Virus record (IMG/VR): IMGVR_UViG_3300025030_000041
Location: 124,001 to 188,000 of that record
Length of the DNA stretch: 64,000 nucleotides
Direction: 5' to 3' (one strand)
This document shows positions 20,276 to 56,359 of the stretch, piece after piece. The notes beneath the pieces were generated by a model that was not told the origin of the DNA, did not search any database, and worked only from the letters and a program-made list of their open reading frames with translations. The position numbers and the translations under genes were made by a program. Within the stretch, counting starts at the first letter, position 1. Every line of letters begins with the position of its first letter.

Positions 20276-20281
20276 GTTATA

Positions 20282-23703: not shown

Positions 23704-23731
23704 AAAAGAGCTGCATTATGCAGCTCTTTTT
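23704..23731 (-). terminator. intrinsic terminator after tail tube gene
   Basis: AAAAGAGCTGCA-TTA-TGCAGCTCTTTT perfect 12-bp stem. Confidence 0.8.
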
Positions 23732-23758
23732 ATATTAAAAAGAATTAGTTTTGTTTTT

Positions 23759-24319: not shown

Positions 24320-24375
24320 CTATATAGTATTATTTTTAGTTATTTATTTTATTTATTTATTCAAAAAAAAAACTT

Positions 24376-25011: not shown

Positions 25012-25016
25012 TATTT

Positions 25017-25343: not shown

Positions 25344-25350
25344 TTTTTAT

Positions 25351-25533
25351 TTATATTTTTATTTCTCCTCTATATATAATTTGATTAAAATCGCTCATAT
25401 GGTCTATTACGAATCGTTTAGCAGAATCTTCAGATTTAAAATATAAAAAATCATATTTATCTATTACTCCAATAAGATAATTAATTTTTACTTCATATCT
25501 ATAGTTATCATCAGACTTATATGTATAATCCAT
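25351..25533 (-). CDS. hypothetical protein
   Basis: 60-aa ORF filling an operon gap. Confidence 0.5.
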   Translation of the reverse strand: MDYTYKSDDNYRYEVKINYLIGVIDKYDFLYFKSEDSAKRFVIDHMSDFNQIIYRGEIKI

Positions 25534-25545
25534 ATTATTTAATTT

Positions 25546-26175: not shown

Positions 26176-26197
26176 ATTTTTATTTTTATTTTTATTT

Positions 26198-26833
26198 TTA
26201 AACATAAACCTTTCCTTTTACATCAATTACTTCTCTTACTTCTTTTTCTGTAAATTTCTTTGTATTATTAGAACAATCAAACCATCCATTAATTGTAGTA
26301 GGAGCTCCTTCAAGACTAGTTAGTTTATTCGTATTACAATCAAAATATCCATTAAATGTAGCAGGAGCTCCTTCAAGACTAGTTATATTATTAATAAAAC
26401 AATAATAACTTCCCTTAGCTATAGTAGGACCCCCTTCAAGACTATTTAACTTATTATTAGAACAATAAAAACCTCCATTAACTGTAGTAGGAGATCCTTC
26501 AAGACTAGTTAAACTATTATTAGAACAATAAAAAAAACCAGTTACTTCGTCTATATCTAGCCCACTCAAATAAGTTATTTCATGTATTCTAACGTTACCT
26601 ATTATAACTTTAATATTCTTAAAGTCTTCTATATTATTTTTAGTTATAAGCATATCTTTATTAAAAGGTTTAGCGACAAATATTTGTTCTTTAGTATAAC
26701 CTTTATTTAGGTAAGGAAGTAACAGGTCATCCCAACGTTCTTTAAGTCTTCTAGGTATAAATATATCTTTAGCACTAAGTTTAGGAGTTTCTTCTTCAGA
26801 TATAAACTGCTCAAAAAGTTTTATATGTTTCAT
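26198..26833 (-). CDS. capsid-targeted LRR protein, paralogue 6 (4 repeats)
   Basis: family core; N- and C-terminal blocks nearly identical to paralogue 5. Confidence 0.85.
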   Translation of the reverse strand: MKHIKLFEQFISEEETPKLSAKDIFIPRRLKERWDDLLLPYLNKGYTKEQIFVAKPFNKDMLITKNNIEDFKNIKVIIGNVRIHEITYLSGLDIDEVTGFFYCSNNSLTSLEGSPTTVNGGFYCSNNKLNSLEGGPTIAKGSYYCFINNITSLEGAPATFNGYFDCNTNKLTSLEGAPTTINGWFDCSNNTKKFTEKEVREVIDVKGKVYV

Positions 26834-27525
26834 TTTAATTCGTCTTGATTTAAATCTAGTACTTTATTAAAATTGTCATTTGATATTAACACAACTTTCA
26901 TAGGCTGGTTATTAGTATATTCTAAGTAATTTAATTTTGGGAATGCTATAAATTTAATATCATTATATTCAAACAAAAATGGGGATTCAATTTGTTCTTT
27001 AAATATATCAGATCCTGATGGTAATGTAATACTAGTTTTTTTAGATTTTACCCCTATATTTTTAGCAAAAAACTCTACAATATTTTTATTTGAAGTTTCA
27101 GTAAATATTAATAGACTATTAATATTCGTTTCTAAAGTTTTTAAAAGACTTGGGAATAATGTATTGTTTAAATAAGTAAAATATTGTTGTTCTTTAAGTA
27201 TATTTTCAGCTTGCTTAATTGATTCATCATCTTTAGTGTCATTCGCAGGCTCAGCTTCATTAATGAATGATAAAAAATCTTTAGTATATTGTTCATCTAT
27301 TTTATAAGTAAACCAGTTTGATTTTTCATTTAATTTAATACCAAATAATGATTTATTATTATAATTTATAGTTGAAATATAAAATTTTTTATTATTTGTT
27401 AGTTCTATTAATCTTATAGATTCTTTATTATTTTCTTTTATTAAAGAAATATTTTTTATTCTATTAGGTAAAATATTATTAGAATATAAAAAATTAGAGA
27501 TTATAGTATTTAATTGTCTTTCCAT
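26830..27525 (-). CDS. hypothetical protein
   Basis: 231-aa ORF coupled by ATGA overlap. Confidence 0.6.
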   Translation of the reverse strand: MERQLNTIISNFLYSNNILPNRIKNISLIKENNKESIRLIELTNNKKFYISTINYNNKSLFGIKLNEKSNWFTYKIDEQYTKDFLSFINEAEPANDTKDDESIKQAENILKEQQYFTYLNNTLFPSLLKTLETNINSLLIFTETSNKNIVEFFAKNIGVKSKKTSITLPSGSDIFKEQIESPFLFEYNDIKFIAFPKLNYLEYTNNQPMKVVLISNDNFNKVLDLNQDELK

Positions 27526-27825
27526 TTAATTTAATTTATTTTGAATAAAATATGTTATTTTAATACTACCATCAGCTTGAGTATCTATATCAAATAATTC
27601 AGTATCCCATAGATCTCCTAGGACATCATTCATTAGTTCTATGGTTAAAGTATCTTCTGGAATAACATTATACACATAATTTCCATCTGTAGTTACTCCA
27701 TCATATTCTATATCTCTAGCATGTTCTTTAAAGGTATTCCATAATATTTTTTTAATTTCATCTGGGTGATACTCTTCAAATTCATTAATAAATTCCTCAA
27801 ATATTTTAATGTGTTTCATTTTCAT
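27526..27825 (-). CDS. capsid-targeted small acidic protein
   Basis: MKHIKIFEEFINE. Confidence 0.7.
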   Translation of the reverse strand: MKMKHIKIFEEFINEFEEYHPDEIKKILWNTFKEHARDIEYDGVTTDGNYVYNVIPEDTLTIELMNDVLGDLWDTELFDIDTQADGSIKITYFIQNKLN

Positions 27826-28520
27826 GTATAAACTCCACCTTTTACTTTAACAGCGTTTCTCACTTCTTTTTCTGTAAATACTTTACTATTATAAGTAATA
27901 GTAAAATTTCCACCAACAATAGTAGGAGCTCCTTCTAGACTAATTAACATATTATCAGAACAATGAAAATTTCCAGTAACTGTAGTAGGAGCTCCTTCTA
28001 GACTAATTAACATATTATCAGAACAATGAAAATTTTCATTAACTGTAGTAGGAGCTCCTTCTAGACTAGTTAATTTATTATTAAAACAATAAAAATCTCC
28101 ATTAACTATAATAGGGCTTCCTTCAAGACTAGTTAATTTATTATTAAAACAATAAAAATCTCCATTAACTATAATAGGGCTTCCTTCAAGACTAGTTAGC
28201 TTATTATTAGAACAATTAAAATATCCAGTTACTTCTTCTATACCTAGTGCTCTCAGATCAGTTATTTCTTTTATTCTAACACCACCTATTATTACTTTAA
28301 TATTTTTAAAGTCTTCTATATTATCTTTAGTTATAATAATAGGTTCATTAAATGGTTTAGCAACAAGTATTTGTTCTTTGGTATAACCTTTATTTAGGTA
28401 AGGAATGAGCAAATCATCCCATCTTTCTTTAAGCCTCCTAGGTATAAATATATCTTTAGCGCTAGGCTTAGGAGTTTCTTCTTCAGATATGAATTGTTCA
28501 AAAAGTTTTATATATTTCAT
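27822..28520 (-). CDS. capsid-targeted LRR protein, paralogue 7 (5 repeats)
   Basis: family core; two pairs of near-identical 63-bp repeats. Confidence 0.85.
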   Translation of the reverse strand: MKYIKLFEQFISEEETPKPSAKDIFIPRRLKERWDDLLIPYLNKGYTKEQILVAKPFNEPIIITKDNIEDFKNIKVIIGGVRIKEITDLRALGIEEVTGYFNCSNNKLTSLEGSPIIVNGDFYCFNNKLTSLEGSPIIVNGDFYCFNNKLTSLEGAPTTVNENFHCSDNMLISLEGAPTTVTGNFHCSDNMLISLEGAPTIVGGNFTITYNSKVFTEKEVRNAVKVKGGVYT

Positions 28521-28981
28521 TTTCCTCCAATGTGATCTCCTATTATTGCTCCAACTGAGGCATTAAATAATCTACTTGTTAATAGGTCATATAAAATACC
28601 TTTTTCAATTCCTAGAGCTTTTGATATAGCTTTACCAATCCATGGTCCAGCAATAAACCCTGTTACGCCTCCTACTAATTTAGATATTATGCCTTCGTCT
28701 AATTTAGAAATTTCAGGATCCTTTTTTAGTTCTTCTAGTAGTTTAGTTTCTATTTCTTTATAGATACATAAAATGTCTTCATCATTTAATGATTCTTTAG
28801 TATTTTCATTAATTTTATAAATAATACTAATATTTTCTGCAATTCTAAGTATATTAGAAACAATTAGGTCTTTATTATCAATGAAGATAATTGTATCATC
28901 CAATTCCTCTAAAATATTTGCAGATATTATTTCTTTATCTAAAATAATAGTTTCTACTATACAGTCATTAAATAATTTCAT
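28517..28981 (-). CDS. hypothetical protein with Gly-rich amphipathic C-terminus
   Basis: KLDEGIISKLVGGVTGFIAGPWIGKAISKALGI; start moved to ATG 28981. Confidence 0.55.
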   Translation of the reverse strand: MKLFNDCIVETIILDKEIISANILEELDDTIIFIDNKDLIVSNILRIAENISIIYKINENTKESLNDEDILCIYKEIETKLLEELKKDPEISKLDEGIISKLVGGVTGFIAGPWIGKAISKALGIEKGILYDLLTSRLFNASVGAIIGDHIGGK

Positions 28982-32066: not shown

Positions 32067-32094
32067 AAATAAACGATTGATTATCAATTAATTA

Positions 32095-32169
32095 TATTTA
32101 GTTCAAAAATAAAGTACTTAAAAATTTTAATATATCAAACTTATTTCTTATTTTTGTATTAAATATAAC
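32095..32169 (+). promoter_or_regulatory. gene-less promoter module, copy 1 (upstream GTTA deleted)
   Basis: near-identical to 35873-35950 and 56282-56359; TATTTTTG at 32149 fits the Bacteroidota -7 box TAnnTTTG. Confidence 0.65.
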
Positions 32170-32564: not shown

Positions 32565-32578
32565 TTGGCAATTTCTGC

Positions 32579-32658
32579 TAACGTTTTGCAGATAAGCGAA
32601 GGCACAAATAGCTTTGGCTTTGTGGGGTGGGATTTGGGCTTTTGCTTATGTGCTGTTA
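32579..32658 (+). repeat. attC-like hairpin H2 (80 bp)
   Basis: TAAC gttttgc AGATAAGCGAAGGC ... GCTTTTGCTTATGT gct GTTA. Confidence 0.85.
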
Positions 32659-32733
32659 TGTGTCTGTAAAATTTTTAATAATTATTTTTTGCGTGGGAAT
32701 TAATCAATTTAATCATTTAATAAAAACAACAAA

Positions 32734-33264
32734 ATGGAAACTTTAAACAAATTATTTACCGAACAAGATGTAGAAAATGTATCAGAAAAAATACTTTCAT
32801 CAACTAAACAAAAAATCAAAGACCAAATTGCTGATACCTTTTACGAAGAAATGTCAGATTGTTTGTTTGAACATTACAACAATTTCAAAGACGGAATGAA
32901 AGCCGATTTGCTAAAGGAAATTACAGACCAATATGTAAGCGACCCTGTAAATTATCAATTTAGAGAATTTAGAAATAAGCTATTTGCAGAGAACAAAGAT
33001 GTAATTCTAAAATCATTGACCGACCAAGCAATTTTTGAAACAGTTGAGAGTATCATTTTAGAATATACTCATAAACAACAAACTTTTGGATGGATGTGGA
33101 ATGAGGCTATCGCAAAAATTGTATTAGCAAATTGGGGTAAATTCAAAGATGATGAAAGAATACAAATGTCATTTGGTAGAGAAATTGATAATTTGAAAGG
33201 ACAAATACAAAGACTGCAAGAACGACTAAATGAAGTTTCATCAATAGTAGACGAAAATCATTAA
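32734..33264 (+). CDS. cassette hypothetical protein (helical, C-terminal coiled coil)
   Basis: 176-aa ORF inside module 32655-33315. Confidence 0.7.
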   Translation: METLNKLFTEQDVENVSEKILSSTKQKIKDQIADTFYEEMSDCLFEHYNNFKDGMKADLLKEITDQYVSDPVNYQFREFRNKLFAENKDVILKSLTDQAIFETVESIILEYTHKQQTFGWMWNEAIAKIVLANWGKFKDDERIQMSFGREIDNLKGQIQRLQERLNEVSSIVDENH

Positions 33265-33311
33265 ATCATTTGTGCGGTGGGAAAAATAATTATTAAAAAT
33301 TTTATTGCACA

Positions 33312-33401
33312 TAACGGTTGGGGGTTTGCGATAGTGCCGCTTACCACAAATTCCAATTTCAGCACTAAACTTCATAGCGGCATTTTGCAAACCCTGTGTT
33401 A
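33312..33401 (+). repeat. attC-like hairpin H3 (90 bp)
   Basis: TAAC ggttgg GGGTTTGCGATAGTGCCGCT ... AGCGGCATTTTGCAAACCC tgt GTTA. Confidence 0.85.
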
Positions 33402-33448
33402 TATGAAGTTTTATTTTTTGAAGGGCGGGCAACAAACAAATTATTAAA

Positions 33449-33718
33449 ATGGAAAAATTAACATCAATCAGATTGCAGCCAATGATTAACATCAATAAAC
33501 CCAATATGGATTTGTGGTGTCCGACATTAAATTTTGGAAGAAAGAAAGCAGGTAAATTCAAATTTCCAATAGTATTTAAAAGTATTAAACCTGCTGAAAA
33601 ACTTTACGATGAACTCCAAAATTTAATTGGCAAATCATTGGACGAAGTGAAAGCTGCATCTGAACCGCTTTATGATAAATACAAGAAGTACGATTATCGG
33701 GTGGGTGGTAAAAAATAA
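33449..33718 (+). CDS. cassette hypothetical protein
   Basis: 89-aa ORF in module 33398-33731. Confidence 0.65.
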   Translation: MEKLTSIRLQPMININKPNMDLWCPTLNFGRKKAGKFKFPIVFKSIKPAEKLYDELQNLIGKSLDEVKAASEPLYDKYKKYDYRVGGKK

Positions 33719-33727
33719 AATTTCCTA

Positions 33728-33841
33728 TAACGGTTTGGTATAAACGCAGTGTTTAACTAAACTTAATTTGAAATACAAAACTTAAAATTATGATAAAGAC
33801 ATTGATTGAAAAACTGGAAACATTACGTTTATACTTTGTTA
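33728..33841 (+). repeat. attC-like hairpin H4 (114 bp, contains start of ORF 33790)
   Basis: TAAC ggtttg GTATAAACGCAGTGTTT ... AAACATTACGTTTATAC ttt GTTA. Confidence 0.85.
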
Positions 33842-33996
33842 GTAAACGCTGTTTTAAAGTAACTTATAAAAGTAAATTGAATGGTAATATAGGAACAATT
33901 GGATATTATGGTAAATCAATTGATGGTGTTAAGAAAAAGTTTCAAAAAGAATTTGAAAATTCAATTATTTTAGACGTTTCTTACAATGTTTACTAA
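33790..33996 (+). CDS. cassette protein crossing the GTTA junction
   Basis: LRLYFV|SKR; stop codon is the TAA of the next TAAC. Confidence 0.65.
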   Translation: MIKTLIEKLETLRLYFVSKRCFKVTYKSKLNGNIGTIGYYGKSIDGVKKKFQKEFENSIILDVSYNVY

Positions 33997-34365
33997 CGTT
34001 ATCGGGCTTGGCGAAGGGCGATTATTAACCGAGAATGTTACTACGAAGAACTAAACAAAAATTTAATAAATAAAAAAAGCGATGGAAATAGATGTAAAAA
34101 AACTGATGCCAGAAGTAACAGATAATCATTTTGAAACGATAGACTTGTTACTTAAAGCAAACCAAGAAATAATTGAAGCATTACATATTATGCAATCCAG
34201 CATTGACAATTGGGATGATGCAGAATGTATGCAAATCAATAAAGACAGAATGATAAAATACTTTAATAGATTTAGTAAGGAGGTGTAGGCTTTTTATTTA
34301 TTAAATTTTTGAACCGAAATGATAATACGAAGCGATAAACTAAGCCTTTTGCCAAGCCTGTGTTA
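33994..34365 (+). repeat. attC-like hairpin H5 (372 bp, encloses ORF 34082-34288)
   Basis: TAAC gttatcg GGCTTGGCGAAGGGC ... GCCTTTTGCCAAGCC tgt GTTA. Confidence 0.8.
34082..34288 (+). CDS. hypothetical protein inside hairpin loop
   Basis: 68-aa ORF with A-rich leader. Confidence 0.6.
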   Translation: MEIDVKKLMPEVTDNHFETIDLLLKANQEIIEALHIMQSSIDNWDDAECMQINKDRMIKYFNRFSKEV

Positions 34366-34404
34366 TAAGGCGAAGCGAACCGTTGGCTTTTCGCCAATGG
34401 CTTA

Positions 34405-34533
34405 TAACGGTTTGCAGGTTTATTCAGTTGCGACTTTAAAAACGAAAAATTATGATAACAGAAAAACAATACTTAAAAGCGAAAAAGTTAATTGCAGACT
34501 ACGAAAGCCAGCAATTGAATAAACATGTTGTTA
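34405..34533 (+). repeat. attC-like hairpin H6 (129 bp, contains start of ORF 34452)
   Basis: TAAC ggtttgc AGGTTTATTCAGTTGC ... GCAATTGAATAAACAT gtt GTTA. Confidence 0.85.
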
Positions 34534-34622
34534 TAAGCAGTAAGCCGACCTCAAAAAAGAAGAAGGTGATTATAGATGCAGATAAATTTTCAAAGATGTG
34601 TGATGTTATTAAACGGATATAG
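34452..34622 (+). CDS. 56-aa cassette protein crossing the GTTA junction (not in ORF track)
   Basis: own translation MITEKQYLKAKKLIADYESQQLNKHVV|ISSKPTSKKKKVIIDADKFSKMCDVIKRI. Confidence 0.6.
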   Translation: MITEKQYLKAKKLIADYESQQLNKHVVISSKPTSKKKKVIIDADKFSKMCDVIKRI

Positions 34623-34634
34623 GCTTATTGCTGC

Positions 34635-34758
34635 TAACGGCTACAAACATGCTTAGTGCCTAATTAAATAGTAATTAACAATCAAAATAGTAGAATTATG
34701 AAAATAGCAAAAATGTTCAAAACTGCACTACAACAGGCATTAAGTATGTTTGTTGTTA
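34635..34758 (+). repeat. attC-like hairpin H7 (124 bp, contains start of ORF 34698)
   Basis: TAAC ggctac AAACATGCTTAGTGCCT ... AGGCATTAAGTATGTTT gtt GTTA. Confidence 0.85.
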
Positions 34759-34958
34759 GCAACCATGTTTACTGGGTTTTCCGTAAATTCAAACGACTTG
34801 AAACAATGGAAACTGCACCTGAAACATGGTTAATTGATGTGGATTTTGCAATCCATTTTGTAGAGCCATTTAAAAGTTATAAAGAGGCAAAGAAAGCAGT
34901 TGACTTTGCAAAACATTTACAACCTTGGCAAGAGTTTGTCATCTTACATGGTTGCTAA
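34698..34958 (+). CDS. cassette protein crossing the GTTA junction
   Basis: ALSMFVV|SNH; stop codon is the TAA of the next TAAT core. Confidence 0.65.
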   Translation: MKIAKMFKTALQQALSMFVVSNHVYWVFRKFKRLETMETAPETWLIDVDFAIHFVEPFKSYKEAKKAVDFAKHLQPWQEFVILHGC

Positions 34959-35045
34959 TGGTTGAGTGTATGAGTAGTGTGGCTTTGCACATACTTTCAA
35001 CTTACAGATAAACTTATTTAGCCACATTACTTATACACTTTGTTA
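34956..35045 (+). repeat. attC-like hairpin H8 (90 bp, TAAT core)
   Basis: TAAT ggttga GTGTATGAGTAGTGTGGCT ... AGCCACATTACTTATACAC ttt GTTA. Confidence 0.85.
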
Positions 35046-35067
35046 TAGGTATGTAAAATTTACGGAT

Positions 35068-35292
35068 ATGAAATTTATAAAAAAACAATTACTTAGAAGT
35101 ATAAACTTTGTTAAACGCTATTGGGAATTTATCGTTGTAGAATTTGCCGAAGATTTGGATTTAACTTGGTTTGGTAAATGGTTTTTAAGAACAATGATGT
35201 TTGGTTTATTTATGTGTTATATTCCAATAGTAATTGTTTTTATGCCACTATGGTTAATTATATTCAAATACGATGAAAGTTTAGGAATGTAG
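35068..35292 (+). CDS. cassette membrane protein (one TM)
   Basis: hydrophobic MMFGLFMCYIPIVIVFMPLWLIIF. Confidence 0.6.
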   Translation: MKFIKKQLLRSINFVKRYWEFIVVEFAEDLDLTWFGKWFLRTMMFGLFMCYIPIVIVFMPLWLIIFKYDESLGM

Positions 35293-35312
35293 GTAGTAAA
35301 TTTTATTACCTA

Positions 35313-35400
35313 TAACATTTAGGTGTATGAGAAGGTTTGCTTAGATGAACTTTCAAATTACCGACAATACTTATAGCAAACTTTCTTATACACCTTGTTA
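35313..35400 (+). repeat. attC-like hairpin H9 (88 bp; second copy at 55317)
   Basis: TAAC atttag GTGTATGAGAAGGTTTGCT ... AGCAAACTTTCTTATACAC ctt GTTA. Confidence 0.85.
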
Positions 35401-35460
35401 TAACCAGTACGATAAAATTAGTAGAAACTTAAATTGAAACATAAATAAAATTTTTTAAAT

Positions 35461-35781
35461 ATGAACGAATACAAATTAAAATTATTGGATTACATCTCAA
35501 AAAATTATGAGAATGTGGTAAAATCAGCACAAGGTGGTGAATATATTGAAATAGATTTAATACCAAACAGCCACGATGGATTACACGATTTACCCGAAAT
35601 TTTGGAATGTTGTGAAAAAAACGGAATTGATGTATATATGTTTTTACGTAGTTATCCAATGGATATTGGTGATGGTATTAGAATGGGAAGATATATGTAT
35701 TATATGCAAAAAACCACCAAGGCAATACTGGATGATTTAAAAAATTTTAACACAGAAACTCAAAACGAAGAACAAAAGTAA
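35461..35781 (+). CDS. cassette hypothetical protein
   Basis: 106-aa ORF in module 35397-35794. Confidence 0.65.
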   Translation: MNEYKLKLLDYISKNYENVVKSAQGGEYIEIDLIPNSHDGLHDLPEILECCEKNGIDVYMFLRSYPMDIGDGIRMGRYMYYMQKTTKAILDDLKNFNTETQNEEQK

Positions 35782-35790
35782 TATTGGTTA

Positions 35791-35876
35791 TAACGTTCTG
35801 TAAATATGATTAGTTGAAGAGTACTGTCATTTATAATTTAGTAGATTGATTATCAATTAATTATATTTACTTGTTA
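35791..35876 (+). repeat. attC-like hairpin H10 (86 bp; copies at 56199 and partial at 32075)
   Basis: TAAC gttct GTAAATATGATTAGTTGA ... TCAATTAATTATATTTAC tt GTTA. Confidence 0.85.
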
Positions 35877-35950
35877 TATTTAGTTCAAAAATAAAGTACT
35901 AAACGTGTTAATATATCAAAAATATTTCTTATTTTTGTATTAAATATAAC
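35873..35950 (+). promoter_or_regulatory. gene-less promoter module, copy 2
   Basis: GTTATATTTAGTTCAAAAATAA...TTATTTTTGTATTAAATATAAC; TAnnTTTG at 35930. Confidence 0.7.
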
Positions 35951-36070
35951 GGTTGAGAATATAAGTAGTAACCGATTTGAAACAAAAATGTTAAATTAAC
36001 GTATAATGATATTAAAAGGTAGTAACTTAAATAAACCACATAACTCGGTTATTACTTATATTCTTTGTTA
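35947..36070 (+). repeat. attC-like hairpin H11 (124 bp)
   Basis: TAAC ggttga GAATATAAGTAGTAACCGA ... TCGGTTATTACTTATATTC ttt GTTA. Confidence 0.85.
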
Positions 36071-36097
36071 TGTGTATGTAAAAATAAATTTATACCA

Positions 36098-36373
36098 ATG
36101 AAAAAAGAAATTAAAATAGGTGACAAGACGTTTGAATTTGAGAGTCCAAACATCTTAGATAAATCAACAACAGATATGATGAATGACTGGTGTAGATTAG
36201 TAGAACAACAAAAGAGTGATGAAGATGTTTGGACGGTGATACCTGAACTACCAGAATACAAATTCAAAAATCTTAAAATAGAGAGTAGTCCGTTTGAAAC
36301 AACAGAAGAAACTACTGAAATGACAGTAACTTTTAAGTATGATGATTTTGAATTTGATGATAAAAACTCATAA
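36098..36373 (+). CDS. cassette acidic hypothetical protein
   Basis: ATG at 36098 in module 36067-36395. Confidence 0.65.
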   Translation: MKKEIKIGDKTFEFESPNILDKSTTDMMNDWCRLVEQQKSDEDVWTVIPELPEYKFKNLKIESSPFETTEETTEMTVTFKYDDFEFDDKNS

Positions 36374-36391
36374 ATTTATTTTTATTACACA

Positions 36392-36474
36392 TAACGGTTG
36401 AGGGTTTATGCAGTTAAATTTTTACCAATAAAAAATAGAAATGAAAAAATTTTATTGCATTAAACCCTGTGTTA
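36392..36474 (+). repeat. attC-like hairpin H12 (83 bp)
   Basis: TAAC ggttga GGGTTTATGCAGTTAAATTTTT ... AAAAATTTTATTGCATTAAACCC tgt GTTA. Confidence 0.85.
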
Positions 36475-36552
36475 GCCGTCTGTATTTTTTAAACATTATT
36501 TTTTTAGGGAGGCATTTAATTAATCAATTTAATCATTAATAAAAACAAAAAA

Positions 36553-37110: not shown

Positions 37111-37283
37111 TCATTGGAGCGTTGGCAAAAAATAATGTTTAAAAAATATTGCGGCTAACTATTATATATATACAAGTATGCTTAATATATTGAATATGAA
37201 TACTAAATTCGATTGCATTATCAGACAATTTAAAAAAACTCAGATAACCCCTTAATACACATCAAATAAAACAATTTAAACTT

Positions 37284-37484: not shown

Positions 37485-37693
37485 GTCAAGACCAAATTAA
37501 TGAAGTCTTAAATCATGCAAAAGATATGATAAGACAACACCCAGAATACAGATGGGGCCAATCTGTATTTAATTCACTATGCCAGTTTTACCCAGACACA
37601 GCTAATGCAATCCGCACAACTGAAAATGATCCGTATTATAATGATGGTATAGTTGACCAGTGTATTAATTTTATAAAAGAAAAAGAGGATTAA
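37469..37693 (+). CDS. small phage protein
   Basis: YRWGQSVFN...DPYY motif. Confidence 0.6.
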   Translation: MFKKLSQDQINEVLNHAKDMIRQHPEYRWGQSVFNSLCQFYPDTANAIRTTENDPYYNDGIVDQCINFIKEKED

Positions 37694-37716
37694 AAATTTA
37701 ATTTTAATCCTCTTTT
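37681..37716. terminator. bidirectional intrinsic terminator between convergent genes
   Basis: AAAAGAGGATTAAAA-ATTTAA-TTTTAATCCTCTTTT. Confidence 0.75.
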
Positions 37717-40647: not shown

Positions 40648-41094
40648 TTAAGTATAGACATCACCTTTTACATCAATTAATTTTCGTACTTCTTCTTCTG
40701 TAAATTTCTTCTTATTATTATTACTAAAAAAATTTCCATTAACTATTTTAGGAGCGCCTTCTAGACTAATTAAGTTATTATAAGAACAACTAAAATATCC
40801 AACTACTTCTTCTATATTTAGCTCTCTTAAATCGTTTATTTCCTTTATTTTAGCATTACCTATTAAAACCGTAATATTCTTAAAATCTTTCATATTATCT
40901 TTAGTTATAATAAAAGTGTCATTAATGGGTTTCACTACAAATATTTGTTCTTTGGTATAACCTTTATTAAGGTAAGGAAGTAATAAGTCATCCCATCTTT
41001 CTTTAAGCCTCCTAGGTATAAATATATCTTTAGCGCTAAGCTTAGGAGTTTCTTCTTCGGATATAAATTGTTCAAATAGTTTTATGTGTTTCAT
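40648..41094 (-). CDS. capsid-targeted LRR protein, paralogue 8 (1 repeat)
   Basis: minimal member with intact N- and C-caps. Confidence 0.85.
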   Translation of the reverse strand: MKHIKLFEQFISEEETPKLSAKDIFIPRRLKERWDDLLLPYLNKGYTKEQIFVVKPINDTFIITKDNMKDFKNITVLIGNAKIKEINDLRELNIEEVVGYFSCSYNNLISLEGAPKIVNGNFFSNNNKKKFTEEEVRKLIDVKGDVYT

Positions 41095-43191
41095 TTATCT
41101 AATCCTGTCAGTTCTAAAAGTTAAATTTTGTATAGTACTATCTATACAAATTATATCAAAAATTGGTTTATATAAAAATAAGGTAGAACCTGCGAAGTCT
41201 GCATCACTAAATATGTCTATTACGTCTATGTAGTTATTTGTAGAATTTGTTAATAATTTAATACTAAACGTGTTTGGAACAATTTCATCATTAAAAATTA
41301 GTCTAAATACTTGGCCGTTTTTCCATTTATTTTTAGAATCGTCTATTATAATTTCAACATCTCCATTTAATACTATTCTAGTACCAGAGTTAACATGTCT
41401 TAAGTAGTTAGTAAATTGTTTTAATTCTATTGTTGTTACATTTATAATATTTACTTCTGGAGAATTTGATAAATTATAATTTTGTACAGTATTAGTTATT
41501 CCAATTTTATTCGGAACATTTTTATCAATTGAAATTCCATCACCGTTTTTTATTGCGTCTATATTATACGAAACTTGGATAGACGTTTTATTATTATAAA
41601 TATTACTAATTTCATCATAATTTTTATTAATTAAACTCATTATAGTTTCGGTATTATCAAATAATGCTTGGTTTGAATTTAATGAATCCTCTATTGTTTT
41701 AAGTCTAGTATCTATTGAAGTAGTCACAGCAGAATCTATTATTAATGATTTTAAATCTGTAATTTCATTTTTTATATTAACAATTTCACTAATATTATCT
41801 CCATAAATTCTAGTTAAATCTTTAAATTGAGTAAGAACATCAGTGTAAAGGTCTAATGAAAATGTAGAATAATCATTAATACTTTTTTCTATAAATACAG
41901 TATCAATAGATGTATCAAATTTAAAATTAGCTTTAAATGCATATGATGTTCCATTAGTATTATTAATAGGGTCTGGCCGATATTTCATTAAAGTTGGAAT
42001 TTTAAAATTAATTCCAGATTGTTCAGGTTTATTTAAAAATAAAATACCATATAAATTAGTAGAAGTATCAGCTGGATTATTTTGATCAAATACATCATAA
42101 TATATTAATACAGCATTAAATTCAAAAGATTTACTTCCAGCGTCATCAGCTAATTGGCTTAAAGATTTAATTGATAAATTTTGTGAAGCTAATGTATAAT
42201 CATTTAATGTAAAATCCAAAGATATACCGTCTAAAGTAGACCTCTTATATTCTACCGTAGTAGATCCTTTTATTTTTCTTATTTTTTCAGTTAATGCACT
42301 ATGAAAATTAGTTATGGAATCAGTAAAATATGAATTATTAGTTTGATTTGGTGAATGCCAATATCTTTCTTCCCATTGAGATAACTGGTAATTATATATT
42401 TCTTGTGTTACACTTCTATCATCAATATCAAAAAATGATTTAATAGATAATCCGTATGGATGAGTATCAAAATAATTTCTTCCAACTAAATATTCAGTAT
42501 TTAATGGATTATCAGGAATATTAGTTAAATTCATTCCAGGTGCATAATTCTCGTCTTCTACTGAATCAAATAATACATAAGGCGTATTACCAACGGAGGT
42601 AGGAGTATGAATATATACCTCAGTATACGCATTTTTAGAATGTTTAACACTATTAACAACATCTATATCTGCAATATATCGTACAACTTTTTTATAATTT
42701 GATGGAGTATTAGTATTACTTAATAGGTGTTCATCTTCTTCAACAAATAAATCTTTAACATTTGTAATTGAATTTTCAAATGGAGTAGCTTTTCTAAATC
42801 GCATAACCCCTAATTCTTTAAGCCATTTCCAAAATACTCTTTCACTTACATTTCTTTTTAATTCTCTATTATAAGCACTCCTACTTGTAATTAAACTTTC
42901 TAAGTTTAAACAATAATTTTGAAATGACTCACTTAAATTAATAGATTGGTCAGTATTTACTCCTTCTATTAATGGGGTTTCTCCTAATACATTAAATTGT
43001 AAAAAATTTTGGTTAGTTTCAGCGTCATTTATTTTACCTATTTCTGGGATACGTAATAATGCAAATTTGCTAAATACAAACTTATTTCCTGTATTATTTG
43101 CAGTAGTCGTTAAGTCTTCAATTGAAGACGGAAATGAATAAAAAATACCCTCGCTGCTTTTTATTGGTTTTATAAATGGAGTTGTTGCCAT
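41095..43191 (-). CDS. large putative virion structural protein
   Basis: 698 aa beside sheath gene; FVFSKFALLRIP, ERVFWKWLKE, AYTEVYIH motifs; coiled-coil segment. Confidence 0.55.
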   Translation of the reverse strand: MATTPFIKPIKSSEGIFYSFPSSIEDLTTTANNTGNKFVFSKFALLRIPEIGKINDAETNQNFLQFNVLGETPLIEGVNTDQSINLSESFQNYCLNLESLITSRSAYNRELKRNVSERVFWKWLKELGVMRFRKATPFENSITNVKDLFVEEDEHLLSNTNTPSNYKKVVRYIADIDVVNSVKHSKNAYTEVYIHTPTSVGNTPYVLFDSVEDENYAPGMNLTNIPDNPLNTEYLVGRNYFDTHPYGLSIKSFFDIDDRSVTQEIYNYQLSQWEERYWHSPNQTNNSYFTDSITNFHSALTEKIRKIKGSTTVEYKRSTLDGISLDFTLNDYTLASQNLSIKSLSQLADDAGSKSFEFNAVLIYYDVFDQNNPADTSTNLYGILFLNKPEQSGINFKIPTLMKYRPDPINNTNGTSYAFKANFKFDTSIDTVFIEKSINDYSTFSLDLYTDVLTQFKDLTRIYGDNISEIVNIKNEITDLKSLIIDSAVTTSIDTRLKTIEDSLNSNQALFDNTETIMSLINKNYDEISNIYNNKTSIQVSYNIDAIKNGDGISIDKNVPNKIGITNTVQNYNLSNSPEVNIINVTTIELKQFTNYLRHVNSGTRIVLNGDVEIIIDDSKNKWKNGQVFRLIFNDEIVPNTFSIKLLTNSTNNYIDVIDIFSDADFAGSTLFLYKPIFDIICIDSTIQNLTFRTDRIR

Positions 43192-43233
43192 TATTTAATA
43201 TTTTTTTAAGATAATTAGAGCTATATGTAGGTA

Positions 43234-43749
43234 TTAATAATTAATAATTCCAGCTTTAGTATCAATTGCATGTTTTATTTCTTTTTGTAAAAACTTTTTG
43301 CCTCTATTTTGGGATATGATAACATCATCTGTAACTAATTTAGGAGCTCCTTCTAGACTAGTTAATGCATTAAAAGTACTAATGAATCTGCCATTTACTA
43401 TTTTAGGACTACCTTTACGATTAGTTAAATTATTGCTAGAACAATTAAAATCTCCAAGCACCTCATCTATATCTATATCCCATTTATTCATATCGCCGTT
43501 TATATAAACTAAACCAACTATAATTTTAATATCTTTAAAATCTTTTACATTATTATCATTTATAATAACTTCATCTCTAAGAGATTTAGCAACTACTATT
43601 TGTTCTTTTGTATAACCTTTATTAAGGTAAGGGATAAGAAGGTCATCCCATCTTTCTTTAAGTCTTCTAGGTATAAATATATTTTTACGACTAAGTTTAG
43701 GTATGTCTTCTTCAGATATAAACTGTTCAAATAATTTAATACGTCTCAT
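43234..43749 (-). CDS. capsid-targeted LRR protein, paralogue 9 (2 repeats, divergent)
   Basis: MRRIKLFEQFISEE plus family core. Confidence 0.8.
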   Translation of the reverse strand: MRRIKLFEQFISEEDIPKLSRKNIFIPRRLKERWDDLLIPYLNKGYTKEQIVVAKSLRDEVIINDNNVKDFKDIKIIVGLVYINGDMNKWDIDIDEVLGDFNCSSNNLTNRKGSPKIVNGRFISTFNALTSLEGAPKLVTDDVIISQNRGKKFLQKEIKHAIDTKAGIINY

Positions 43750-43798
43750 TATTTTTATTTATATAAAAATTAAAAAAAAATATGATTTGCTCCTTGAA

Positions 43799-44296
43799 TT
43801 AAAAATTAAAATCTTTTGCAATTTTAGTTATATTGTTATCTAATTCAGTTAGGTCACACTCTTTAGATTTTAATATATAAAAATCCAAATTAAAAAATTG
43901 TAATGGCTTATGTGTATACTTTAAAGATGACCTGTATTTTTTAACAATTTTATAACAAAACCTATCATAAAAAAGTCTTCTAGTTTTAGATTCGTCTAAT
44001 GCACAAAAAATAAAAGACTCTGGCTGTATTTCTTCTATAAATTGAATGGCTGCTGAATCGATAGTAGGAATAGATAAAAAAGCTTTTTTAGGATCATTTA
44101 ACAACTTAAATTCTCCATTTGCTTTAAACTTAAATAACCAGTGGTTTTGTAAAGTTGAATAGTTTGTGATAGCTATATCATATTTAATATCATCTATTTT
44201 AAATACTCCTATCCATTCGCTTTGCGATTTATTCCAATTTATTAATAACGGATTTTTTAATCCTTCTATAATAAATTTTTGAAAATTTTTAAACAT
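43799..44296 (-). CDS. capsid-targeted protein (intact relative of pseudogene at 2232/3897)
   Basis: MFKNFQKFIIE; RRLFYDRF motif. Confidence 0.65.
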   Translation of the reverse strand: MFKNFQKFIIEGLKNPLLINWNKSQSEWIGVFKIDDIKYDIAITNYSTLQNHWLFKFKANGEFKLLNDPKKAFLSIPTIDSAAIQFIEEIQPESFIFCALDESKTRRLFYDRFCYKIVKKYRSSLKYTHKPLQFFNLDFYILKSKECDLTELDNNITKIAKDFNF

Positions 44297-44993
44297 AAAC
44301 TTCTCCTTTTATATCAATAACATGTCTTACTTCTTTTTCTGTAAATTTCTTTAAATTATTGCTTATATTAAAATCTCCTCTTATTATAGAGGGTGTCCCT
44401 TCAAGGCTAGTTAATCTATTATAAGAACAATCAAAAAAGCCATTAACTATAACGGGACCACCATCTAAACTAGTTAAGATATTATTAGAACAATTAAAGT
44501 TACCTCCTATTGTGGAAAGGCATCCTTCAAGACTAGTTAACTTATTATTAGAGCATGAGAAATTTCCATTAACTGATACAGGACTTCCTTCTAAACTAGT
44601 TAAGTTATTATTAGAACAACTAAAATACCCATTAACTATAGTAGGACCGCCTTCTAAACTAGTTAGTTTATTTAACTTATTTAAGTAACAATCAAAATTT
44701 CCTGATATTTCATCTACCCTTAATACTCTCAAATCATTTATTCCTCGTATTATAGCATTACCTATTATAACTTTAATATTCTTAAAGTCTTTTATATTAT
44801 TTTTAGTTATACTAATAACTTCATTAAAGGGTTTAGTTACAAATATTTGGTCTTTTGTATAACCTTTATTTAGATATGGAATACACAAAGAATCTCGTCT
44901 TTCTTTAAGTGGTATAAATATATCTTTGACACTATAATTATGATTCTTAAATTTATTAGATGCATTACAGTCTAATAGACTATGATATTTCAT
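44289..44993 (-). CDS. LRR protein, paralogue 10 (5 repeats; targeting peptide replaced)
   Basis: family core from KDIFIP onward, unrelated first ~20 aa. Confidence 0.8.
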   Translation of the reverse strand: MKYHSLLDCNASNKFKNHNYSVKDIFIPLKERRDSLCIPYLNKGYTKDQIFVTKPFNEVISITKNNIKDFKNIKVIIGNAIIRGINDLRVLRVDEISGNFDCYLNKLNKLTSLEGGPTIVNGYFSCSNNNLTSLEGSPVSVNGNFSCSNNKLTSLEGCLSTIGGNFNCSNNILTSLDGGPVIVNGFFDCSYNRLTSLEGTPSIIRGDFNISNNLKKFTEKEVRHVIDIKGEVYV

Positions 44994-44995
44994 TT

Positions 44996-46429
44996 TTATA
45001 AAGTATCTACTGTTAATTTAATTAAGTCAGCCATAGATTTAAATGGTTGTTTACTATTTATTACTTTCTTTAGTGCATCTTCTACTAATTTTTCGTCGAA
45101 CCCAGCTTTAATTAATTTAGTTTTAGCTTTACTTAAAATCTCCGAGTCTTTTATATTTTTTGCTTTATTTACTTCAGGTTTATTTACAGCGTCTTTAATT
45201 GTAAAAGTTACAAAATTTTCTACAGTTTCTTCTGCTTGTTTAGTAACTTTCTCTAATTCTTTCTTTTTAGTTTCATCTTCTTTTTGTTTTAGTTGAGTTT
45301 CTAATTTAAAAATAAGTTCTTTTTGTTTTTTTAATTCTTCTACATATTTAGAAGTATCAGTTGGTTTAACAACAGTATTTAATTTATTAATATCAGTATT
45401 TAAATTTTGTTCTTCCTCTTTTAATCTCTTATTTAAACCGGATATTTCGACTTGAATTTTTTCTTTTTCTTTTTTAGTAATATTGGCACTATTAATAATA
45501 TTTTCTTTTTGCCTAATAGATTTTTTAATAATTATAATATTTTTATTAGTTATATCAATCTGTTCTTTTAAATCATTAATACTAGCCCGAGGAGCTTCTT
45601 CTTTTTTTTCGGTAGGCACTTCTTTTTTTTCAGTAGGCCCTTCTTTTTTCTCAATAGGTATTTCTAATTTCGAAATACTTTCTGTAGCTTGCTTATTACT
45701 TTCAATAAATTCATTTTTAAATTTTTCTAAGTCTTTAAATAATGGGTCTTTACTAATATCTTCTGATGGAATTAAAGCCTGCCTAACATCTGCTTCTAAA
45801 TTAGTCAAAGCAACTTTAATAAGATTAAACCGGTTCAATAATATATCTTTGATTGCCACTAACTCTTTAACTCTTTTCGGTTTATCATGGTATTTTTCTG
45901 CTAACTTTTTTAAATCATTTACGAAATTATCAAATTTATTTTCTATAAATTCTATATTAGATGTTTTAGCTTTTCGCAAAGCTTCCTTTGCATTTTTAGT
46001 TCTTTCATATAATATTTCAGTTCTTGTTTTCAATTCGTCATACTCAGGCAATCCTCGCTGCTGAGATTTTTTCAATTGCTTTAATGCAATTGTTCCTTTG
46101 TAATATTCCTCTTCTAACATTAATTCTCTAAATAATAAAGTTAAATACGTTTTTAATAATTTACTAGAACTAATAGTAGAATCACCTAACACAGCGTCAG
46201 CTATATCTCTTACAGATTGACCTTTAAATTTTCTAAATTTCTTAAATCTTAAATCTTTAGCATCTATACTTTCTTCTAAAGAATCTAACCCTACTATATC
46301 TTCACCTTCTTTTTTTATTTTTAAAGACTCTTTATCAAATTTAGCCTTAGTAAATAACCCATGTATAAAACTAAATAACCCCTCGTTAATACTATTTTCT
46401 TGCATTTTATTTTTTTTATTTTTAAGCAA
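44996..46429 (-). CDS. Lys/Glu-rich coiled-coil protein, putative internal head protein
   Basis: SINE|GLFSFI possible processing site; long heptad stretches. Confidence 0.5.
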   Translation of the reverse strand: MLKNKKNKMQENSINEGLFSFIHGLFTKAKFDKESLKIKKEGEDIVGLDSLEESIDAKDLRFKKFRKFKGQSVRDIADAVLGDSTISSSKLLKTYLTLLFRELMLEEEYYKGTIALKQLKKSQQRGLPEYDELKTRTEILYERTKNAKEALRKAKTSNIEFIENKFDNFVNDLKKLAEKYHDKPKRVKELVAIKDILLNRFNLIKVALTNLEADVRQALIPSEDISKDPLFKDLEKFKNEFIESNKQATESISKLEIPIEKKEGPTEKKEVPTEKKEEAPRASINDLKEQIDITNKNIIIIKKSIRQKENIINSANITKKEKEKIQVEISGLNKRLKEEEQNLNTDINKLNTVVKPTDTSKYVEELKKQKELIFKLETQLKQKEDETKKKELEKVTKQAEETVENFVTFTIKDAVNKPEVNKAKNIKDSEILSKAKTKLIKAGFDEKLVEDALKKVINSKQPFKSMADLIKLTVDTL

Positions 46430-54364: not shown

Positions 54365-54423
54365 TTAAATATTAAATACTGCTAAATTACAATATACTTT
54401 TGTATTATTTTAATACAAGTATG

Positions 54424-54460
54424 TATATCAAAAACTTTTCTTATATTTGTATTAAATACT
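54424..54460 (+). promoter_or_regulatory. Bacteroidota-type promoter related to the promoter module
   Basis: TATATCAAAAACTTTTCTTATATTTGTATTAAATA; TATATTTG at 54442. Confidence 0.6.
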
Positions 54461-54492
54461 AAGTTTTATTTTTAACCTAAAACCTATATATC

Positions 54493-56185: not shown

Positions 56186-56198
56186 AAAATATTGTGTA

Positions 56199-56285
56199 TA
56201 ATGCCCCGTAAATATAATTTAGTTAAAGAGTACTGTCATTTATAATTTAGTAGATTGATTATCAATTAATTATATTTACCTGTTA
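56199..56285 (+). repeat. attC-like hairpin H14 (copy of H10)
   Basis: TAAT gcccc GTAAATATAATTTAGTT ... ATCAATTAATTATATTTAC ct GTTA; loop nearly identical to H10. Confidence 0.85.
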
Positions 56286-56359
56286 TATTTAGTTCAAAAA
56301 TAAAGTACTAAAAATGTTAATATATCAAAAACATTTCTTATTTTTGTATTAAATATAAT
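56282..56359 (+). promoter_or_regulatory. gene-less promoter module, copy 3 (no downstream + strand gene)
   Basis: near-identical to copy 2; TAnnTTTG at 56339. Confidence 0.7.

Follow-up and report, generated by a model that had tools for sequence, protein, structure and literature searches.

Complete copies of a repeated gene-less DNA unit, most likely a promoter, are built like the small-gene cassettes of recombinase-linked hairpin arrays in a giant phage

The DNA stretch analyzed here (the window) comprises 64,000 nucleotides, positions 124,001 to 188,000 of IMG/VR record IMGVR_UViG_3300025030_000041, a groundwater phage of 246,115 bp and 26% GC. The window holds runs of small genes of unknown function separated by hairpins, among which a short module without an open reading frame (ORF) recurs. 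Its features are as follows, in window coordinates unless a genome position is given.

32075..32169 (+), copy 1 of the module, short form, starting at a palindrome right after the stop codon of the helicase gene; -7 box at 32149-32156, predicted transcription start 32161
32577..36476 (+), hairpin array, with hairpins at 32577-32660, 33310-33403, 33731-33838, 34954-35047, 35311-35402, 35789-35878, 35945-36072 and 36390-36476; a second small group lies at 55315-55404 and 55597-55724
34405..34639 (+), 235-bp gene unit (57-aa ORF at 34452-34625) bounded TAACG...TAACG and present three times in the genome at 99% identity
35789..35878 (+), array-type hairpin (TAACG...TTGTTAT) forming the left part of the complete promoter unit (copy 2)
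35791..35951 (+), complete putative promoter unit, copy 2, bounded by TAACG at 35791 and 35947
35845..35857 (no strand), perfect 6+1+6 palindrome ATTGATTATCAAT, a possible regulator binding site, also at 32076 and 56254 and kept in 12 of 17 copies
35873..35950 (+), 78-bp module, two 22-nt inverted arms around a 34-nt center
35886..35893 (-), mirror TATTTTTG box in the left arm
35912..35946 (+), conserved putative promoter core, TATATCAAAA, 3 variable nt, then TTTCTTATTTTTGTATTAAATA, the only part kept in the truncated copies
35930..35937 (+), -7 box TATTTTTG, with the transcription start predicted at A35942, 3 nt before the TAAC of the next hairpin
35945..36072 (+), next array hairpin (genome 159945-160072), sharing TATAAC with the right end of the module
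36098..36373 (+), first downstream small ORF, 91 aa, without a family match
37151..37255 (+), conserved segment that precedes the recombinase gene elsewhere, followed by a 19-codon 5' remnant of a recombinase gene (37196-37255) at the end of this array; 91% identical to genome 77290-77392, which leads into the intact recombinase (genome 77341-78156)
54412..54461 (+), copy 4, core only and diverged; box TATATTTG at 54442-54449, predicted start 54454, ATG at 54493
56197..56359 (+), copy 3, long form, 96% identical to copy 2, with a degraded left hairpin (TATAAT in place of TATAAC); box at 56339-56346; no + strand ORF lies in it or between it and the convergent gene at 56470-57270

A preliminary description of the window, made from the sequence alone, had reported a 78-bp ORF-less module at 32095-32169, 35873-35950 and 56282-56359 and a related motif at 54424-54460, and this observation is confirmed and proves larger than first described. 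A 35-nt core pattern allowing up to 3 mismatches matched at 32131, 35912, 54424 and 56321, all on the + strand, whereas 100 dinucleotide-preserving shuffles gave no match. The arms at 35873-35894 and 35929-35950 are 91% complementary, and they place CAAAAATA, which reads TATTTTTG on the - strand, at 32104, 35886 and 56295. Conservation runs further upstream than the 78 bp, to 35791 in copy 2, to about 56208 in copy 3 and to 32075 in copy 1, and the whole genome holds 17 copies of the core, on both strands. Depth in the source metagenome is about 360x over the module and about 20x over unique sequence, in agreement with roughly 17 real copies rather than an assembly artifact. Contigs from four DNA runs aligned to the window were informative for copy depth only: the joints they showed are the genome's own paralogous arrangements, and the low-share runs contain the same phage at 2-5x rather than relatives.

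All 17 copies are intergenic, in a genome that is 11.6% intergenic (p about 1e-16). Fifteen are co-oriented with the next called gene (p = 0.002), and a 16th, at genome 238409, is followed by a 29-aa ORF. The copies are concentrated in six clusters of small ORFs; downstream genes have a median length of 79 aa, against 167 aa genome-wide (p = 4e-5), and none has a known function. The ATG lies 10-159 nt after the core. Three truncated copies keep only the right-hand core, without the left arm, 11-159 nt before an ATG.

The right arm carries an exact match to the -7 box (TAnnTTTG) of the Bacteroidota primary sigma factor, sigma-A, which occupies -12 to -5 in Flavobacterium psychrophilum (PMC9723704); by that rule transcription would start at the A five bases beyond the box (32161, 35942, 54454 and 56351). 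The box is exact in 15 of 17 copies (TATTTTTG, and TATATTTG once, the latter differing only at a free "nn" position), and two copies have TATTTTTA instead of the full box. The most conserved stretch runs from about -30 to +8 of the predicted start rather than symmetrically over the two arms. No TTTG is found near -33, where positions -36 to -33 read TGTT, TTTT or ATTT, but this is a weak criterion, since the motif was also not found in F. johnsoniae promoters (PMC7366714) and its absence is not disqualifying in Flavobacteria. Outside the modules TAnnTTTG is neither enriched nor oriented in this genome (23 of 44 intergenic boxes are co-oriented with the next gene), and TATTTTTG itself occurs at 100 sites. 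The phage also encodes two to three ECF-type sigma factors that could read other signals. An ECF-type pattern, TGAAAC-N16-CGT, in the hairpin loops occurs only once in the right orientation, and a sigma-70 scan found 33 sites against 33.1 expected. A search for RNA runs containing the phage returned none, so that promoter activity and the start positions are inferred from sequence alone.

A Bacteroidota host is credible on indirect evidence. The protein encoded at 52235-54364 has a T9SS sorting domain and an SprB repeat, the tail sheath is nearest to proteins of Mahaphage, Lak and Flavobacterium phages, and the nearest cultured-phage relatives of the recombinase infect Polaribacter and Cellulophaga.

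The 78-bp inverted repeat is not a free-standing element; it lies between two members of a family of strand-specific hairpins (5'-TAAC...GTTA-3') that separate the small genes. A first scan by MFE closure was too permissive, picking up LRR genes, and hairpins were therefore identified with a stacked-pair detector with shuffle controls and with covariance models; an initial model that included window sequences was rebuilt from the hairpins of other phages only (model R2). The family shows strong covariation, with 25 pairs, 16 of them with compensatory changes, and two invariant G.U pairs among 44 hairpins from other phages. R2 scores the left hairpin of copy 2 at 40.8 bits on the + strand and 14.8 on the -, the next hairpin at 50.9 bits (E 3e-7), and the degraded left hairpin of copy 3 at 21.4 bits; it also finds the hairpins that follow six modules, and all its hits in the window arrays are far stronger on + than on -. 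The left hairpin of copy 2 folds at -21 kcal/mol (z -3.3) and the next at -34 kcal/mol (z -4.6); the -7 box lies within, and is flanked by, stable hairpins with z-scores of -3.1 to -4.6. The hairpins are 20-30% GC and lack a U-tract, a terminator scan found none at the modules, and no Rfam family matched in the array.

In this phage and in over 200 other viral contigs the hairpins form arrays directly upstream of a XerA-like tyrosine recombinase. In 39 loci, 198 hairpins lie upstream and 4 downstream of the recombinase, and 262 fold better on the recombinase-sense strand against 8 on the other; shuffled sequence gave 4 hairpins against 275 observed. In five genomes of 256-362 kb, each with a single recombinase, about 33 of 41 hits lie within 17 kb upstream of it. 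The phage studied here has three separate pairings of an array with a recombinase gene or its remnant, and the three complete promoter units each sit two units upstream of one. The recombinase aligns continuously, end to end, with archaeal XerA (4a8e, 5hxy), whereas its alignment to VchIntIA (2a3v) splits, 24 query residues facing 70 IntI residues, so that the IntI-specific insertion is lacking; all NCBIfam scores fall below their cut-offs. A dif-like 11-6-11 Xer site could not be recognized, by direct reading, in the module or at the hairpin bases.

The complete unit, a hairpin followed by a 70-nt payload, shares its TAAC|G boundaries with the gene units. Copy 2 is 99.4% identical over 162 bp to genome 76572-76733 and 94% identical to 235000-235173, in unrelated flanks, each starting and ending at TAACG. 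The 235-bp gene unit has the same boundaries, and a 315-bp unit, bounded ATAACG...TAACG, is 100% identical in two other phages, again in unrelated flanks. Five complete units are bounded TAACG...TAACG, but homology blocks between phages break at both hairpin ends, about 2:1 at TAAC over the 3' GTTA once hairpin-only matches are set aside, and a single fixed crossover point is not established. Only three to four of the 17 copies are complete units (35791-35951, genome 76572 and 235173, and the degraded one at 56197). The other 13 have nested left ends, or only the 45-nt core, as ordinary promoters do, and seven copies lack the TAAC end and the following hairpin. The near-identical units in unrelated flanks would fit recombination between copies, but the metagenome contigs showed no circle junctions and no presence/absence variants. 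Exact and degenerate core patterns searched in IMG/VR and JGI metagenomes returned only this phage; no relative carries the module, and none has a -7 box placed before a hairpin, so the promoter payload has no comparative support.

Payload ends are inverted repeats in 54% of units, against 7% of cross-paired controls. In the 78-bp module 94% of cells are paired across 14 copies, against about 50% for slid controls; covariation is not significant, the copies being too similar for the test. The mirror box is exact in 11 of the 14 copies that have both arms.

We favor, with a probability of roughly 0.55, the hypothesis that the module is the core of an ORF-less regulatory unit of a myovirus infecting a member of the Bacteroidota. 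In this view the right arm is a promoter of the host primary-sigma type, and each copy would restart transcription of the following one or more small genes. The 78-bp inverted repeat would be the terminal inverted repeat that payloads in these arrays often have, and the mirror box most likely a by-product of that rule. Units would spread and swap by recombination at the hairpin bases, either through site-specific recombination by the recombinase on folded single strands, as in integrons, or between the short conserved sequences, as with the promoter-early stem-loops (PeSLs) of T4-type phages. The sequence, copy number, orientation, boundaries, hairpin covariation and linkage to the recombinase are established directly by the analysis, whereas promoter activity, the start site, mobility and the recombination mechanism are inferences.

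The interpretation offered in the preliminary description, that promoters are themselves mobile cassettes re-priming expression inside the array, is partly supported. The element is indeed gene-less, repeated, oriented with the downstream genes and equipped with an exact -7 box, and because its complete copies have the build and boundaries of the small-gene units, a promoter cassette in an integron-like array is a fair structural description. The contrast drawn with the single Pc of classical integrons is wrong, since gene-less cassettes with promoter activity are documented in Vibrio superintegrons and oral integrons (PMC11014356, PMC6557892) and mobile promoter/stem-loop cassettes in T4-type phages (PMC2839356). 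The mirror box, which that description placed on the - strand through the inverted repeat, has no evidence of use apart from the copy at genome 110528 discussed below, and its reading of copy 3, with no gene downstream, as the expected outcome of shuffling remains conjecture.

Among the alternatives, an ordinary family of PeSL-like early promoters is the strongest, although we consider it unlikely. In that case a strong promoter with flanking stem-loops would be duplicated and homogenized by homologous recombination inside regions of small accessory genes, the hairpins would act only in RNA (processing, stability or attenuation of polycistronic early transcripts), and the recombinase would be adjacent only because gene order is conserved in this phage clade. 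The build and location match PeSLs (PMC2839356), the hairpins fold better on the sense strand (11 of 14, p = 0.005, in addition to the 262 against 8 above) and have invariant G.U pairs, which fits a role in RNA just as well, and invariant G.U pairs with a partly conserved loop are usual for functional RNA. Payload ORFs are on the same strand as the hairpins in 146 of 150 cases, so that everything is co-transcribed, and the nested left ends and the homology breaks at both hairpin ends also agree. Against this reading stand the confinement of hairpins to the few kilobases upstream of the single recombinase in genomes of 256-362 kb, the three array-recombinase pairings in this phage, the 99-100% identical units ending exactly at TAACG in unrelated flanks, and the A+T-rich hairpins without U-tracts, unlike the G/C-rich terminators of PeSLs. 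It is less likely still that the module is no promoter at all but a structural or recombination element or protein-binding site (a payload-level hairpin, a secondary recombination site or an operator cluster), with TATTTTTG a coincidence in 26% GC DNA. The well-kept inverted repeat, the perfect palindrome, four copies of TTATATTTA or its complement within the module, the abundance of TATTTTTG without orientation bias outside the modules, and the existence of ORF-less units without any -7 box in relatives favor that view, but the core-only copies directly before start codons, the restriction of variation inside the box to a free position, the orientation and distance to the ATG, and the asymmetric conservation speak for a promoter.

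A truly bidirectional promoter, in which both -7 boxes would fire and the left one would produce antisense or divergent transcripts, is comparably unlikely. In the one full copy between divergent genes (genome 110528) the mirror arm is perfected to the sequence of the forward arm, 92 nt before a gene on the other strand, and an antisense promoter cassette is known in Vibrio (PMC11014356). However, in most copies the mirror box faces the 3' end of a co-directional gene, in another copy between divergent genes (genome 239364) it is broken and the divergent gene has its own box, and terminal inverted repeats are general in these arrays whatever the payload. An invertible promoter switch, in which the 34-nt center would flip between the two arms through the phage recombinases and redirect transcription, is suggested by the inverted repeats and tyrosine recombinases, which recall the invertible promoters of Bacteroides, but it is very improbable: all 14 two-armed copies have the center in the same orientation, no strand-changing joint appears in the metagenome contigs, and 34 bp between the arms is too short for synapsis. 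The module is also not a MITE of fixed length with target-site duplications, since its left ends are nested at five or more different points and the TAACG repeats flank the 162-bp unit, not the 78-bp inverted repeat.

A bolder possibility, which we hold only tentatively, is that large uncultivated phages of Bacteroidota carry an integron analogue, in which a XerA-like recombinase without the IntI domain recombines folded, sense-strand hairpins near TAA|C and thereby captures and shuffles small accessory-gene cassettes within and between phages. One cassette type in this phage, carrying no gene but a host-type promoter, would have multiplied to 17 sites and would re-prime expression along the arrays, including that of the recombinase itself. 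If the core is a promoter, it is a ready-made, compact and probably strong Bacteroidota phage promoter with a predictable start site, and it shows how a giant phage keeps long runs of tiny accessory genes expressed. The setting matters more: hairpin-delimited gene units recurring in over 200 viral contigs, with identical units in different phages, make testable the question of how phages acquire and reshuffle their many small genes of unknown function, and would extend integron-style gene capture, including promoter cassettes, to viruses and to a recombinase outside the IntI family. If the hairpins instead work only in RNA, they are still a new, strongly covarying structured element of phage early operons.

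Compared with Bacteroidota sigma-A promoters (-7 TAnnTTTG, -33 TTTG), the module has the exact -7 box, A+T-rich surroundings and an expected distance to the start codon giving 5' leaders of about 17-160 nt, but it lacks the -33 TTTG, and about 40 nt are conserved around the box, far more than sigma recognition needs, suggesting added regulator sites or recent copying. With the PeSLs of T4-type phages (Arbiol et al. 2010, PMC2839356; Comeau et al. 2014, PMC4122927) it shares the plan of short repeated intergenic cassettes, dozens per genome, that combine a host-type early promoter (here predicted) with stem-loops, are concentrated in variable regions upstream of small genes without known relatives, and are implicated in shuffling of the flanking genes; the phage is likewise a large myovirus, whose tail sheath also matches T4-like phages distantly. 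It differs in its Bacteroidota -7 rather than -35/-10 type of promoter, in its long (80-130 nt), A+T-rich, strand-specific stem-loops with conserved TAAC/GTTA bases in place of G/C-rich terminators, and in the tie to a tyrosine recombinase. Exchange in PeSLs is by homologous recombination, with mini-circles shown experimentally, whereas here exchange is inferred from sequence.

Integrons, and attC clusters without an integrase (CALINs), including those reported in virulent phages (Cury et al. 2016, PMC4889954; Qi et al. 2023, PMC9892861), likewise present arrays of small, mostly promoter-less genes separated by strand-specific imperfect hairpins of 50-140 nt that begin ...AAC and end GTT..., and here the arrays lie 5' of the recombinase gene on the strand that folds, which is the geometry of intI relative to attC bottom strands. 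Judged by form alone, the hairpins fit attC sites (57-141 nt) in shape, size (80-90 and 120-129 nt), TAAC/GTTA ends, an asymmetric internal loop and strand bias. The recombinase, however, is XerA-like, the cassette ORFs lie on the folding strand, the loop is conserved in length and partly in sequence, two invariant G.T/G.U pairs replace extrahelical bases, and the phage CALINs reported so far have two to three predicted sites and no linked recombinase. The promoter-carrying gene-less cassettes of sedentary chromosomal integrons (Blanco et al. 2024, PMC11014356; Tansirichaiya et al. 2019, PMC6557892) sit in bacteria, with a true IntI, canonical attC sites and a Pc promoter, whereas here the platform is a phage, the hairpin precedes its payload on the coding strand, and promoter activity is predicted. 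Like the complete units described here, they are ORF-less units with the same boundaries as the gene cassettes around them, and they carry promoters, mostly on the sense strand, that restart expression of downstream cassettes far from the end of the array.

The four sites in the preliminary description read as described, and the observation was confirmed. A 35-nt core pattern, allowing up to 3 mismatches, hits the window four times, all on the + strand, and was not found in any of 100 dinucleotide-preserving shuffles. The features on which the following analysis rests, with transcription starts predicted from the promoter box, are:

32131 (+), core of copy 1, with TATTTTTG at 32149, the mirror CAAAAATA at 32104 and a predicted start at A32161
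35912 (+), core of copy 2, with TATTTTTG at 35930, the mirror CAAAAATA at 35886 and a predicted start at A35942
54424 (+), core of copy 4, with TATATTTG at 54442 and a predicted start at A54454
56321 (+), core of copy 3, with TATTTTTG at 56339, the mirror CAAAAATA at 56295 and a predicted start at A56351
35873-35894 and 35929-35950, the two arms of the inverted repeat, 91% complementary

The window (positions 124001-188000) is part of a 246,115-bp virus record with 26% GC, in which the core occurs 17 times, 10 on the + strand and 7 on the - strand. In the source groundwater metagenome, depth is about 360x over the module and about 20x over unique sequence, which fits that copy number.

The phage is a myovirus whose tail sheath is nearest to the huge "Mahaphage" and Lak phages and to a Flavobacterium phage, and matches T4-like sheaths more distantly. 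A 709-aa protein (window 52235-54364) carries an SprB repeat, PKD domains and a T9SS C-terminal sorting domain, and would be exported by the type IX secretion system of the host; both the sorting domain and the SprB repeat are hallmarks of Bacteroidota. The genome encodes two XerA-like tyrosine recombinases (77341-78156 and 233720-234523) and two to three ECF-type sigma factors, comprising two clear ECF-type sigma-70 family genes and one weak one (71756-72205, 212480-212950 and 52008-52145), whose promoters were not identified. No T7-type RNA polymerase was found, but the search also found nothing in its control genomes and is uninformative. The gene for the ribonucleotide reductase large subunit (genome 194383-197334) is interrupted by an intein. 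The window also contains a tRNA-Asn (GTT) gene (10098-10171) and, at 6279-9260, 17498-28522, 40711-45000 and 62944-63603, a large paralogous family of genes built from 63-nt (21-aa) leucine-rich-type repeats with shared 5' ends, more copies of which lie elsewhere in the genome.

When aligned and oriented, the copies of the module share a fixed right end, TTTCTTATTTTTGTATTAAATATAAC, with the boundary immediately before GG, whereas their left ends are nested. Four copies (window copies 2 and 3 and genome 76572 and 235173) extend about 160 bp, to a boundary between TAAC and GTTCTGTAAATATGA; about eight start near a perfect palindrome, ATTGATTATCAAT; one starts at the 78-bp form; and three (genome 46601 and 118978, and window 54423) keep only about 45 nt of the right arm. 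The most conserved stretch is TATATCAAAA, followed by 3 variable nt and then TTTCTTATTTTTGTATTAAATA. A further family of intergenic repeats, consisting of a (TA)n tract followed by ATGTTTAAACTATAATAAAATCAAT...AAAGATTTGTAAACAAAAACTTATATA, was found at genome 50987-51059, 68587-68687 and 108901-109003; one copy ends at a TAACG, and the family may represent another promoter class or a tiny ORF.

Several lines of sequence evidence suggest that the module is a promoter. All 17 copies are intergenic; 15 point at the next called gene (p = 0.002), and a 16th (genome 238409) is followed by a 29-aa ORF, leaving window copy 3 as the only true orphan. A symmetric hairpin with runs of A and T on both sides, resembling a bidirectional terminator, lies at the convergent junction between the small-gene cluster and the tail sheath gene (window 37681-37716), but the cluster that ends with orphan copy 3 has no such site. 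The downstream genes are small, with a median of 79 aa against 167 aa genome-wide (p = 4e-5), and none has a known function. The sigma-A box of Flavobacteria occupies -12 to -5 (PMC9723704), which places the predicted starts at the A residues listed above. There is no TTTG at -33, although this motif is also not recoverable in F. johnsoniae (PMC7366714). The copies that keep only the core sit 11-159 nt before an ATG, which argues that the right arm works on its own, as a promoter would and a hairpin would not. Against this reading, two copies carry TATTTTTA, and generic TAnnTTTG boxes outside the modules show neither enrichment nor orientation bias. No RNA run contains the phage, so promoter activity is inferred from sequence alone; we estimate the probability of promoter function at about 0.65-0.7.

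The intergenic regions of the small-gene clusters hold a second family of elements, long hairpins that start right after the stop codon and have the form 5'-(TA)TAAC-GKTTK-arm...loop...arm-YTT-GTTA(TA)-3'. Their arms differ between copies but stay complementary (own-arm score 13.9, against 5.4 for cross-pairing), and they fold better on the sense strand in 11 of 14 cases (p = 0.005). The long form of the module can be resolved into consecutive parts:

35789-35878, a hairpin of this family
a 70-nt payload holding the putative promoter
the TATAAC that opens the next hairpin (35945-36072)

The 78-bp inverted repeat of the preliminary description therefore runs from the GTTATA that closes one hairpin to the TATAAC that opens the next.

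Complete units recur in unrelated flanks. The 162-bp putative promoter unit is 99.4% identical between genome 76572-76733 and window 35791-35952, and 94% identical to a third copy, and it starts and ends at TAACG. A 235-bp unit encoding a 57-aa lysine-rich protein occurs three times at 99% identity with the same boundaries (window 34405-34639; genome 75298-75532 and 234575-234808); its start codon lies in the loop of the unit's own hairpin, the right arm of which lies in the coding sequence. Single hairpins also recur alone at 85-86% identity. In two different viral contigs, a 315-bp hairpin-plus-payload unit bounded ATAACG...TAACG is 100% identical, at different positions in their arrays and in unrelated flanks (1242-1556 of locus L074 and 4607-4921 of locus L106, both from IMG/VR).

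The recombinase at genome 77341-78156 has 217 relatives, 50-59% identical, in IMG/VR contigs, many of them 50-360 kb long. In the 79 loci retrieved (L064-L142), a stacked-pair detector finds 275 TAAC...GTTA hairpins, against 4 in shuffled sequence. In the 39 loci with full flanks, 198 hairpins lie upstream of the recombinase and 4 downstream; 262 fold better on the coding strand of the recombinase and 8 on the other, and lengths fall into two classes, 80-89 and 120-129 nt. An alignment of 44 hairpins from other phages gives 25 pairs, 16 with compensatory changes, plus two invariant G.U pairs. A covariance model built only from those 44 hairpins finds 18 hairpins in this genome, including the ones that follow six modules and, with filters off, the left hairpin of the promoter unit (40.8 bits on the + strand against 14.8 on the - strand). 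In five near-complete relatives of 256-362 kb, each with a single recombinase, about 33 of 41 hits lie within 17 kb upstream of that gene on its strand. In this recombinase family, an array of covarying, strand-specific hairpins and small ORFs (median 82 aa) lies directly upstream in each, and this looks like an undescribed integron-like platform of large phages.

In the phage itself, the three complete promoter units each sit two units upstream of a recombinase gene or, in the window, of its remnant. The array at 32.5-37.1 kb ends with the conserved segment that precedes the recombinase gene elsewhere (window 37151-37255), followed by only the first 19 codons of a recombinase gene (37196-37255; MNTKFDCIIRQFKKTQITP, then a stop), broken at ...GATAAC.

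The geometry matches that of integrons viewed from the attC bottom strand, with folding-strand hairpins stacked 5' of a recombinase gene on the same strand, and on our reading of the integron mechanism, unit boundaries at the 5' AAC of the folding strand are where such a mechanism would cut. There are, however, clear differences and reservations. The recombinase lacks the IntI insertion: 24 of its residues face 70 residues of VchIntIA, whereas its alignment to XerA is continuous. Homology blocks between phages also end at the 3' GTTA. Sense-strand folding, invariant G.U pairs and a partly conserved loop would suit a role in RNA equally well, and because payload ORFs are on the hairpin strand in 146 of 150 cases, strand cannot separate the two readings. 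The cassette build is what we take the sequence data to show, although we rate it, for the complete copies, as only more likely than not; promoter activity, the transcription starts and any recombination by the recombinase are inferred, and site-specific mobility remains a tentative suggestion.

The mirror box does not require a promoter explanation. In the arrays of other phages, 54% of payloads have complementary ends, against 7% of cross-paired controls; the inverted repeat is therefore a general rule of these arrays. The mirror box usually faces the end of a co-directional gene. One copy between divergent genes (genome 110528) has a perfected mirror arm 92 nt before a gene on the other strand, but another (genome 239364) has a broken mirror box. 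Use of the mirror box is thus possible in single cases but unsupported as a rule. Overall, the evidence bears out only part of the preliminary interpretation of the module as a mobile promoter cassette.

What appears to be new is the platform, namely recombinase-linked hairpin arrays in large Bacteroidota phages with a non-IntI recombinase, together with a putative promoter payload that has multiplied to 17 sites in one phage. Literature searches found no description of such arrays, no relative carries this payload, and none has a -7 box before a hairpin. The idea of a promoter cassette is nevertheless not without precedent: PeSLs of T4-type phages are mobile promoter/stem-loop cassettes in variable regions (PMC2839356, PMC4122927), gene-less cassettes of Vibrio superintegrons and of oral integrons have promoter activity (PMC11014356, PMC6557892), and attC clusters have been reported in virulent phages (PMC9892861).
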